Assembly: GCA_021613535.1 (NCBI GenBank)
Contig: CP075493.1
Coordinates: 7,874,001-7,938,000 of the forward strand
DNA length: 64,000 bases
Source: Adineta vaga
Lineage: Eukaryota > Animalia > Rotifera
Direction of reading: 5' to 3'
A program made the translations under genes and the position numbers. Below, piece after piece: positions 59,670 through 62,200 of this stretch. The notes under the pieces were generated by a model. The model saw only the letters and a program-made list of their open reading frames with translations, had not been told where the DNA came from and did no database searches. The stretch's first letter is position 1, and every line of letters begins with the position of its first letter.

Positions 59670-60199
59670 TCGTATTGAATACTACGTTATTTTACAAAAA
59701 GAAAAACAACGCTGAAGAAAATGATCAGTATCTATGTAAATAAAATAAGTAGTCTTCTTGCAATTGTCAACAAACAGAACGGACGAGAATGAGAAGCAAG
59801 AGAGAGAGAGAGAAAAAGAAAAGAATGGTACGGTTATTTTTGCACCAATCATTTTCCAATAATCATATGACTATTACCATGTGGTAGCACATTGGATCAT
59901 ATTTAACAGAAAAAAAGAAAACAATTTATGACCTTCATTTCGCGGTCATATCATTTCGGATGATGTAACGATAGAATATTTTAATGAATTGTTTCGATGT
60001 TTGACAATTCTAGTATTTACTAACACATTGAAAACGTGAAACTCATTTTAATTCGACAATTCTTTAAGAAAAAATGACTGTATCATCAAATGTTTAGTAT
60101 ATATTGTTGTTTATTCTTTATGTAAAGAAAAGTCAGATTCATTTTCATGTGTTAATTATTATTTCGTTCATCTATCTATGATTTATTTCAAATAACAAT

Positions 60200-61051
60200 T
60201 CAGTCTGTTTGTTGATACGGCATGAATCCAATACATGATGAACTTGAACAGTGGCATGGTTTTGAAAATTTGTCATCAACTATCGTTCCATAACTGTAGG
60301 ATAATTCTTCATGTTCTTGAATTTCTCTTAGAGTAAAAAATGCTAAACGTGGTGGTGTTGGTTGATCGATTCGAATTGGTACGATATGTAAATTTGGATT
60401 ACAACTATGATTTATAAATCGTGTCCAATTACCATAATAACGTGCATCAATAAATGTTTTAATAATTGATTGAGAATGATGTTCATTGTAGAGTAATAAA
60501 TAATTATGTTCAAATGTTTTTGTTTGTGCAATTCGACGATGTGCTTCTTCTTCTGAAAGAACTTCACCAACATATTCACCAATATATGTTCCTGATCGCT
60601 GAATAGGCTTGTTAATAATAACACCATTACCTTTGTTTGATGTAGATATAATTTGAACATTTTTTGATTGATCTTCTTGTTGACTAACACGATTCTGGCA
60701 TGTTTCTAATAGACAATCACATTCAGAATTACACTCCAATACAGGACCTAATTTATTGGAATTTAAACAACAATTGGAATCATAATTGAGACCAAAACGA
60801 GTTGCACATGAACAATTCGTACATGTATCTTCCGATGAACATAAACATCCTTCATATTGTTCATCTTCTTCATTAGTCGTTTGAATTAAACAAGAATCGA
60901 TATACTATGTAGAAATTAATATTAGTTTGTTTCATTTTATTTTTGAAAAAAGTTTAACAGAAAAAGAAAAACCATTTCCTACCACAAATGGTGTTTTTTC
61001 ATTTAAAGCTGCTGCTGTTGTTATGGTTTGTTGTTCAATTGTAGTTGTCAT
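60200..61051 (-). CDS. Pre-SET/SET/post-SET lysine methyltransferase, SETMAR-like (no transposase), about 257 aa
   Basis: Exon 61051-60983, intron 60905-60982, exon 60904-60200. Motifs PFV|YID, GCLC, ECNSECDC, EYVGEV, RFINHSCNPN, EELSYSYG, CHCSSSSC. Confidence 0.88.
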
Positions 61052-61389
61052 GATGATAATGGTAGAGTAAATGAAATAGCGGTTAGATCATTCGTTCGAA
61101 TCAATGCCGTTGGCATAGAACCAATTGGTGTTTGTAAATCTTGTACTAAGATTTGAGAAAAATTTGAATCTATACTAAGACAATGAGTAGCTTTTAATGA
61201 TGATTCACGATGAAAATCAAGTTCAATTGGTGAAATAGTTTTATTTTTCTGAAGATATTCAAGAACATTTAAAAAATGTGAACGTAATTCAGCACGTTTT
61301 TCTTGTTTAGACGACGAATTTTCTGGAGCTTGAGTAGCTAATGCATGACGATATGCTGCAAGACCGTCATCATTATCAATATTTGACAT
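61048..61389 (-). CDS. GEMIN7: Gem-associated protein 7 (Sm-like fold, SMN complex)
   Basis: QEKRAELRSHFL...VQDLQTPIGSMPTALIRTNDL matches my recollection of the Gemin7 signature (EQ.ARA.LR..L; LQTPIG....ALLR.SD). Confidence 0.8.
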   Translation of the reverse strand: MSNIDNDDGLAAYRHALATQAPENSSSKQEKRAELRSHFLNVLEYLQKNKTISPIELDFHRESSLKATHCLSIDSNFSQILVQDLQTPIGSMPTALIRTNDLTAISFTLPLSS

Positions 61390-61480
61390 CTGAAATAAAG
61401 GAATATCTGTAACTTAATGAGTAAGCATACGTTTTTATTAGATTGAAAGTACAAGACTGAAAAGAATAGCTTCTGTTTAT

Positions 61481-62200
61481 TTAATACGGATGCATCGATG
61501 GTGGTTGATATCCTCCCGTATTTATACGTGAACAGGCATTCATATATTCATTAAAATCTAGAACTCCTGTTTGATTAGTATCGAAACGACGAAACGTTGC
61601 TTCAGATTCACGTTCAATATCCTGCCATGCCATGTTAAGTAATGAAGAAATAAAAAGTCTTCGAAAACCTTCACGATCAATTACACCATTTGGATTCGCA
61701 TAGTTATTAAATTCATATCGAAATCGTTCGACTTCTGGAATGGAAATTCCACTTTGATTAGAAATGGAAATATTGTTTTCATATACAGATGGATGCTGAT
61801 TATTTGAGAACAATGGTGCTGCTTGCGTTGGCTGCTGATTATTTGAGAACAATGGTGCTGCTTGCGTTGGCTGCTGTTGTGCATATTGTGGCGATGGTTG
61901 TTGCATATACTGCGGTTGTTGCATATACTGCGGTTGCTGCATATACTGTGGTTGTTGCTGCTGCATATATTGTGGTTGTTGCTGCATATATTGTGGTTGT
62001 TGCTGCATATACTGTGGTTGTTGCTGCATATACTGTGGTTGTTGCTGCATATATTGAGCTGGTTGTTGTACATATTGTGGTTGCTGTGCGTACTGAGGTT
62101 GTTGTTGAGCAATAGGTCGTTGCTGAGCAGCTGGAGCTCCTGTGCCTGGTTTTGGAGTTTTTGCGAACACTCCTTTTATTCTTTGAAAAAAAGTACTCAT
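61481..62200 (-). CDS. Gln/Pro/Tyr/Met-repeat low-complexity protein with C-terminal EF-hand pair
   Basis: (QPQYMQQ)n repeats; EF loops YANPNGVIDREGF (degenerate) and FDTNQTGVLDFNEY (canonical); intronless. Confidence 0.8.
   Translation of the reverse strand: MSTFFQRIKGVFAKTPKPGTGAPAAQQRPIAQQQPQYAQQPQYVQQPAQYMQQQPQYMQQQPQYMQQQPQYMQQQPQYMQQQQPQYMQQPQYMQQPQYMQQPSPQYAQQQPTQAAPLFSNNQQPTQAAPLFSNNQHPSVYENNISISNQSGISIPEVERFRYEFNNYANPNGVIDREGFRRLFISSLLNMAWQDIERESEATFRRFDTNQTGVLDFNEYMNACSRINTGGYQPPSMHPY
61796..62106 (-). repeat. Coding tandem repeats: 18-24-nt QPQYMQ(Q) units and a 39-nt duplication (QQPTQAAPLFSNN x2)
   Basis: Direct reading of the sequence. Confidence 0.9.

Follow-up and report, generated by a model that had tools for sequence, protein, structure and literature searches.

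How can two full-length animal genes both be expressed when the stop codon of the first lies on the start codon of the second? This question is raised by a locus on chromosome 1 of Adineta vaga, a bdelloid rotifer, within a stretch of 64,000 nucleotides (nt) of contig CP075493.1 (assembly GCA_021613535.1, positions 7,874,001 to 7,938,000), which we refer to as the window. On the minus strand of the window, in a region of about 31% G+C, the TGA that ends a gene for Gemin7 shares the letters ATGA with the ATG that opens a gene for a SET-domain lysine methyltransferase. The reading that we favor, with a probability of roughly 0.55, is that the two proteins come from one leader-capped, spliced bicistronic mRNA, on which a part of the ribosomes finishing Gemin7 would reinitiate at the overlapping AUG independently of a TURBS (termination upstream ribosome-binding site). 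A preliminary description of this DNA had pointed to the same arrangement from its letters, and its claims are taken up below beside the results that bear on them.

Gene identities and RNA evidence

The elements of the Gemin7-SET pair, in the order of transcription, are as follows.

61390..61400, minus strand: spliced-leader acceptor of Gemin7, ctttatttcAG (AG at 61391-61390), abutting the Gemin7 ATG
61048..61389, minus strand: Gemin7 coding sequence, 113 codons and TGA (Pfam PF11095, E = 6.6e-16)
61048..61051, minus strand: ATGA stop-start overlap, with the SET ATG at 61051-61049 and the Gemin7 TGA at 61050-61048 (read in the sequence)
60983..61051, minus strand: SET exon 1, 23 codons (MTTTIEQQTITTAAALNEKTPFV; MTTTIEQQ...TPFV), a conserved peptide with its donor used in four of four RNA runs
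60905..60982, minus strand: SET intron 1, 78 nt, from the GT at 60982 through the AG at 60905, in phase 0 (RNA contigs)
60941-60936, minus strand: AATAAA within SET intron 1, a candidate alternative poly(A) signal
60200..60904, minus strand: SET exon 2, with the Pre-SET Cys cluster, the SET domain (NHSC, ELSYSYG), and the post-SET CHCSSSSC (Pfam and translation)
60202-60200, minus strand: SET stop codon TGA, with an AATAAA at 60187-60182 (read in the sequence)

For Gemin7 (PF11095), the profile match scored 58.4 bits against a cut-off of 25 and covered positions 2-76 of 76, and its 37 homologues, 58-91% identical, were all bdelloid-like. The two exons of the downstream open reading frame (ORF) were searched separately. 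Exon 2 matched the SET family (E = 1.3e-21, 77.4 bits) and, slightly below the cut-off of 29.1, the Pre-SET family (27.4 bits), and the motifs of SETMAR/SUV39-type enzymes, namely the Pre-SET Cys cluster, NHSC with ELxxxY, and a post-SET CxCxxxxC, could all be read in its translation. Its best relative of solved structure was the SET domain of human SETMAR (3bo5, E = 2.5e-39), with EHMT2 reaching only 2.6e-26. As predicted from its sequence, the downstream ORF is a SETMAR-type methyltransferase. The joined product has the N-terminal peptide (M)TTTIEQQTITTAAALNEK, is 257 amino acids (aa) long, and is identical to the annotated A. vaga protein I4U23_002531 (P0001), in which the sole Met besides the start sits 7 residues from the end.

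The RNA data were assembled Logan contigs from four runs (X1, X4, X15, and X17) of four studies, compared over a region of 3801 letters; such contigs may merge overlapping transcripts, so that a contig over two genes is not equivalent to one transcript, and their depths are not comparable. That all four runs represent RNA follows from the presence in each of the joint 60904/60983 (minus strand GT..AG, plus strand CT..AC), at which the 78-nt intron is removed, and from the lack of any coverage over 59843-60096. Record 19 of X17 (1067 nt) reads, in mRNA sense, 5 unmatched letters, 61391-60983, and then 60904-60252, that is, Gemin7, the ATGA, SET exon 1, and SET exon 2 with the intron gone. X1, X4, and X15 each carried an unbroken contig over 60983-61391 (in X1 up to 61399), and on the 3' side RNA contigs extended to 60160 and 60138. 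An unspliced 137-nt branch over SET intron 1 (60876-61012) in these same three runs indicates intron retention. Between 60100 and 61400, no joint besides that of the SET intron was present in the four runs, and a spliced Gemin7-SET fusion was not seen. Two contigs from other bdelloids are built alike: L016 (Logan RNA contig SRR22100215, with a SET 70% identical) holds a leader tail, Gemin7, the ATGA, and a spliced, complete SET ORF, and L017, from a Didymodactylos-like species, is a spliced contig over both genes.

Several claims of the preliminary description can be judged at this point. Its coordinates for the overlap of the Gemin7 stop and the SET start all hold, and the 23-codon exon that it drew from that ATG does splice in frame to the pre-SET/SET exon, with the joint seen in RNA contigs of four studies. 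Its observation that the SET frame has no other Met until the last 7 residues is borne out by I4U23_002531, and both ORFs proved to be real, conserved genes, with the SET N-terminal peptide kept from Adineta to Didymodactylos. It had also allowed for an indel error in the assembly; over 60983-61391 the RNA contigs of the four studies contained no letter difference and no indel, and such an error is therefore excluded.

The spliced leader and the stop-start junction

The sequence GCTTATTACAACTTACCAAGAG of the bdelloid spliced leader was checked in the A. vaga assembly (six contigs, 100.8 Mb). Followed directly by GT, it had 58 matches there with at most 2 mismatches (29 per strand), and the reversed control had 0. 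Leader genes lie mostly in inverted pairs about 156 nt apart (for example, C1:2551158-2551338) and also in clusters, notably on contig 5 (for example, C5:9884354-9925971), and some variants of the leader have A at position 10 or at position 13.

A T-rich tract and YAG directly preceded the Gemin7 ATG in 19 of 19 genomic loci, and L016 begins CAAGAG+ATG, the last 6 nt of the 23-nt leader joined to the Gemin7 start. Based on this acceptor and this leader tail, we concluded that Gemin7 is trans-spliced at its AUG and that the leader forms the whole of its 5' untranslated region (UTR). In three of the four A. vaga runs a contig terminated exactly at 61391, the A of the AG before the Gemin7 ATG; the contigs seem to end there, and not at 61389, because the terminal AG of the leader matches the genomic AG.

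At the SET ATG, in contrast to the Gemin7 acceptor, none of the loci compared had a T-rich tract with YAG, nor was there a pyrimidine tract or a conserved AG upstream. Upstream of the SET ATG, the nearest AG is 88 nt away in A. vaga and 52 nt away in L029. Most loci have it at 25 nt, as part of the codon pair ACA-GCT, for which A. vaga has ACC-GCT. As the two cistrons leave no DNA between them, and as A. vaga has no AG over 88 nt upstream of the SET ATG, the step from Gemin7 to SET does not have the layout of an operon resolved by a spliced leader (SL), a layout which the preceding step, from an upstream EF-hand gene to Gemin7, does have. Trans-splicing at the SET start is accordingly disfavored.

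An ATG that overlaps a TGA stop needs just a preceding A, for which the chance is about 1/3 in this AT-rich genome, and the ATGA overlap alone is not significant. It carries weight beyond chance because the ATG opens a conserved, RNA-verified SET frame and because the juxtaposition is kept across genera. The preliminary description had seen the overlap in one genome; across 16 bdelloid loci where both genes are intact, the stop-start distance ranged from -4 to +18 nt, as follows.

ATGA, offset -4: A. vaga, A. ricciae (L013), L016, L029, and L031 (5 loci)
TAATG, offset -1: Rotaria L014, L022-L028, and L030 (9 loci)
TAA, 5 nt, ATG, offset +5: A. steineri (L012)
TAA, 18 nt, ATG, offset +18: the spliced contig L017 of the Didymodactylos-like species

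All of these offsets fall inside the stop-start window of roughly 20 nt that a review gives for reinitiation after long ORFs (PMC10275272). Three short contigs (L035-L037) contribute one further ATGA and two further TAATG junctions. These NCBI/ENA contigs of 455-525 nt were also considered as Gemin7-only transcripts and rejected, being genomic fragments that include upstream intergenic DNA.

The TAATG loci read TAATGA and thus hold two in-frame Gemin7 stops (TAA TGA), so that when the first is lost Gemin7 still ends on the ATG; for this reason one substitution suffices to pass between ATGA and TAATG without parting stop and start. Both sides of the junction vary by indels, the Gemin7 tail after a conserved SFT reading LPLSS, IPSL, IKS, IKSS, IKSA, IQSS, or IQ and the SET N-terminus ranging from MIEEQ to MTTTTTTIEEQ. 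The SET N-terminal peptide (M-T-T-T-I-E-Q/E-Q-T-I...K-T-P-F-V-Y-I-D) is kept in A. ricciae, A. steineri, two Rotaria, Didymodactylos, and metagenomic bdelloids. More distant SET homologues (L033 and L034, about 40% identity) do not adjoin Gemin7, and as far as sampled the pairing looks specific to bdelloids.

Routes to the SET protein

Under the reading that we favor, one mature mRNA would yield both Gemin7 and the SETMAR-type lysine methyltransferase in bdelloid rotifers. The primary transcript would be trans-spliced to the 23-nt leader exactly at the Gemin7 AUG, would lose the 78-nt SET intron, and would be polyadenylated about 40-60 nt past the SET stop, giving a mature mRNA of about 1.2 kb. 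Ribosomes would translate the 113 codons of Gemin7 and terminate at the UGA of the AUGA. After termination, some of the 40S subunits would remain on the RNA, which is unstructured and A-rich at this point, acquire initiator tRNA, and begin anew at the overlapping AUG, producing SET in a termination-reinitiation that would proceed without a TURBS element of the calicivirus type. The SET product would be expected at the lower level, and a second, Gemin7-only mRNA may arise by polyadenylation at the conserved AATAAA of intron 1 in competition with splicing. In its favor speak the kept geometry of the junction, the double stop of the TAATGA loci, the leader acceptor at Gemin7 against none at SET, the spliced contigs over both genes, the many AUGs that hinder leaky scanning, the unstructured junction, and the recurrence of such pairs in the genome. 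We infer the presence of both ORFs on single molecules, the reinitiation step, and the intronic poly(A) site.

The last of these draws on an alignment of the introns. A AAAATAAAA block was aligned in SET intron 1 in 14 of 14 genomic loci with an intact pair, which share the layout GTAGGAG, T-run, GTT, AAAATAAAA, and it is absent from the Didymodactylos locus L015. AATAAA is common in AT-rich introns, and shuffling put its chance per intron at 0.11-0.56, figures that cannot simply be multiplied because the loci are related. The block could nevertheless serve as the poly(A) signal of a Gemin7-only mRNA, competing with splicing, and the view in the preliminary description that the pair leaves no room for a poly(A) site was to this extent too strong.

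A number of results weigh against coupled reinitiation. The UGGGA (TGGGA) of TURBS motif 1, already missed upstream of the SET start in the preliminary description, did not occur over the final 120 nt of Gemin7 in any of 15 loci, A. vaga among them, and a TURBS-type element at the SET start is disfavored. No conserved structure was found at the junction, where the consensus fold of 13 loci came to -3.5 kcal/mol with 0 of 14 predicted pairs covarying and where the single-sequence fold of A. vaga had a z-score of 0.13; that the junction region is unstructured counts, for its part, in favor of coupling. The last 20 codons of Gemin7 showed no extra synonymous constraint, their synonymous diversity being as high as elsewhere. 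Reinitiation in eukaryotes after an ORF of 113 codons is normally inefficient. In L016 and L017, the SET ATG follows an AG at a distance of 1-3 nt. The single mRNA of the preliminary description stands in one part, in that spliced contigs run from the acceptor through Gemin7 to SET (X17 record 19, L016, and L017), and not in the other, since contigs merge overlapping transcripts and cannot prove a single bicistronic molecule. Finally, Didymodactylos carnosus has two diverged copies in which the pair is split, L015 (1860-2010) and L018 (3725-4581). L018 retains a whole Gemin7, preceded by the usual acceptor. What comes after it is a remnant of SET exon 1 in decay, and the 530 nt that are left contain no SET exon 2. 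The SET of L015 is intact, while Gemin7 ahead of it is a remnant with stops; its ATG is preceded, at 1 nt, by an AG, and its intron lacks AATAAA. SET thus has no absolute need of an intact upstream ORF and can be expressed without one, there perhaps through the AG 1 nt before the ATG.

The split in Didymodactylos fits coupled reinitiation, if a new acceptor arose after coupling was lost, and also fits a scheme of two overlapping, separate mRNAs, in which the SET 5' end lies inside Gemin7, at an internal promoter or a cryptic leader acceptor, the Gemin7 mRNA ends in SET intron 1, and the overlap reflects extreme genome compaction. We regard this scheme as unlikely, though it is the main rival. 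Overlapping transcripts of this kind would be inseparable in our contigs, the conserved AATAAA in SET intron 1 would suit the Gemin7 end, and SET does persist behind a decayed Gemin7; bdelloids are generally known to trans-splice widely, their leader genes are confirmed in this genome, and the AG 25 nt before the SET ATG in most loci (1-3 nt in L016 and L017) might serve as an acceptor. Against such an acceptor stand the 88 nt in A. vaga and the 52 nt in L029 that are free of AG, as well as the lack of a T-rich tract with YAG at any SET ATG. From the only conserved AG, which lies in the QDL codons, an A. vaga RNA would moreover keep a 22-codon upstream ORF ending at the ATGA. Within 60983-61391 no contig break or loose end occurred in the four runs, which counts only weakly because assemblers clip short tips. 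Separate mRNAs would give no reason for the stop to be held on the start through repeated indels on both sides. This last point also bears on a bicistronic mRNA that is real but whose SET is reached by internal entry, by shunting, or by leaky scanning from the 23-nt leader, a route that we consider improbable and that would likewise leave the kept stop unexplained. The 5' UTR contains nothing but the leader, which the AUG follows immediately, very short leaders can favor bypass of the first AUG, and the lack of a TURBS-like element would be accounted for; however, 5-10 further AUGs in several frames precede the SET AUG in most loci (7 within the A. vaga Gemin7), which makes leaky scanning implausible, as the preliminary description had judged, and no conserved structure or sequence fit to be an entry site was found.

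A fusion of Gemin7 and SET into one protein, by a -1/+2 frameshift or by a small intron, is scarcely credible, even though three database models of 350-355 aa carry both domains. These are annotations of A. steineri, Rotaria sp. Silwood1, and Rotaria sp. Silwood2 (P0002, P0004, and P0005), in which an invented mini-intron of about 60 nt removes conserved residues, the last 16 of Gemin7 and the first of SET. Their donor is a GT that belongs to a CGT codon, and their acceptor AGs differ; A. vaga has CGA there and thus lacks the donor. In our view the fused models are artefacts of gene prediction, brought about by RNA coverage that runs on without a gap, and stop-start pairs are likely to be mis-annotated more widely in rotifer genomes. 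The sole joint in A. vaga RNA is that of the 78-nt SET intron, no slippery heptamer precedes the Gemin7 stop, and in L017 the two ORFs lie in the same frame with three stops between them. For A. vaga, where the four RNA runs have no such joint and where both donor GT and slippery site are missing, the frameshifted or spliced fusion is ruled out, and with it the alternative of a -1 frameshift that the preliminary description had raised.

Neighboring genes, further pairs, and known systems

Around the pair, the following features complete the cluster.

61481..62200, minus strand: EF-hand gene, Q-rich (PQYMQQ repeats), 239 aa (ORF, EF-hand Pfam matches, RNA contigs)
61439-61434, minus strand: AATAAA of the EF-hand gene, 43 nt before the Gemin7 acceptor
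about 530 nt downstream of SET, same strand: gene for a HAD-type phosphatase

The EF-hand gene ends 91 nt before Gemin7 on the same strand, and it is conserved, A. steineri, A. ricciae, and Rotaria likewise having it upstream of Gemin7. Its poly(A) region and the trans-splice site of Gemin7 almost adjoin (61396-61440, minus strand), as in compact SL operons, and an X4 contig of its 3' end stops 5 nt short of the Gemin7 acceptor, at 61396. Within the gene, at 61850-62110 on the minus strand, there is a tandem PQYMQQQ-type repeat where RNA contigs deviate from the assembly: one run skips 105 nt, a second run has TGC inserted at 62021, and there is a loose end at 61936. These deviations suggest repeat-length alleles or an assembly collapse. 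A DNA search of the haploid A. vaga assembly for a second copy of the Gemin7-SET locus matched the locus alone, and protein searches of that genome gave no second SET orthologue. A weak Gemin7-like remnant occurs on contig 4 (L003:1504-1632, about 2919180-2919308), with 42% identity across residues 20-61, an internal TGA, and no SET nearby, and is possibly a decayed ohnologue of the locus.

Two further pairs of the same geometry were found in A. vaga, both on contig 6.

C6:3680698-3681449 (L039:1181-1932): LYR-family (SDHAF1-like) ORF of 82 aa, ending caaTAATGtcc on the start of the first exon of Tam41/TAMM41 (LYR Pfam E = 2.4e-5, slightly under the cut-off; Tam41 E = 5.3e-44)
C6:9207229-9207686 (L040:1486-1943), minus strand: last exon of PAC3/PSMG3, ending ctATGAtt on the COX16 start (PAC3 E = 1.2e-7; COX16 E = 3e-13)

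Each of the three verified pairs has a small protein in the upstream place: Gemin7 with 113 aa, the LYR protein with 82 aa, and PAC3, for which the reading covered the last exon and the size is taken from the family (87-position Pfam model). Small upstream proteins suit a design limited by reinitiation. We tentatively suggest, at somewhat less than even odds, that bdelloids carry a class of TURBS-independent stop-start bicistrons, each with a small conserved protein followed by a second protein whose AUG overlaps the stop; Gemin7/SETMAR-type SET, LYR/SDHAF1-like/Tam41, and PAC3/PSMG3/COX16 may be its members.

The two cistrons may also be related in function. Human SETMAR has a similar SET domain, with the difference that the rotifer protein is without the transposase part, which is specific to primates. 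Gemin7 belongs to the SMN complex, which assembles small nuclear ribonucleoproteins (snRNPs). SETMAR was reported to methylate the U1 snRNP protein snRNP70 (PMC8704517), and by this analogy a functional snRNP link between the two cistrons is conceivable.

Documented cases of reinitiation after long ORFs come mainly from viruses and retrotransposons. The caliciviruses (VP1/VP2) and influenza B (M1/BM2) resemble the bdelloid pair in having a long upstream ORF, a stop and a start that overlap or lie less than 20 nt apart, and the AUGA and UAAUG forms (PMC10275272). Those systems are driven by TURBS, whereas the bdelloid pair lacks UGGGA, a conserved stem, and extra synonymous constraint upstream, and it consists of cellular animal genes on a leader-capped mRNA with an intron in the second cistron. 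In the non-LTR (long terminal repeat) retrotransposon SART1 and the hypovirus CHV1 (PMC2699510), UAAUG or AUGA likewise couples two long ORFs on a eukaryotic RNA, and does so without the calicivirus motif. Their coupling depends on a specific RNA structure (PMC10275272); they are selfish or viral elements, in contrast to the housekeeping genes of the bdelloid pair, which have no conserved structure at the junction. For cellular mRNAs, the 2023 review holds that the rules of reinitiation are unknown and that the few downstream products are without known role (PMC10275272). As far as its account of Gould et al. 2014 goes, that work described cellular mRNAs whose downstream ORFs, overlapping the stop of the main ORF, are expressed by coupled termination-reinitiation, with a biological role for the products still undetermined; relative to that account, the bdelloid products differ in being both conserved and well-known proteins, in an arrangement kept across genera.

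A search of the open-access literature found no paper on bicistronic or polycistronic mRNAs of rotifers, which is not proof of absence. The locus offers a clean cellular test case, with two conserved cistrons of recognisable function, a junction kept in AUGA and UAAUG forms, the viral helper absent, and an arrangement that occurs in at least three gene pairs of the genome. If our reading is true, animal ribosomes would need no special RNA elements for the coupling of two full-length genes, and it would become clear why gene prediction in rotifer genomes fuses such pairs or splits them wrongly. The SL operons of nematodes, tunicates, and chaetognaths (PMC12460157) share with the bdelloid locus a same-strand cluster, here of the EF-hand gene, Gemin7, and SET, and the addition of a leader, here at Gemin7. 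They differ at the step from Gemin7 to SET, which has neither an intercistronic region nor an acceptor, so that in A. vaga trans-splicing cannot resolve it. A layer at the level of translation would thereby be added to metazoan operons, and, should the three pairs indeed form a class, the bdelloid machinery would routinely reinitiate after ORFs of about 100 codons, placing a coupling of bacterial or viral style among ordinary animal nuclear genes, atop their spliced-leader operons.

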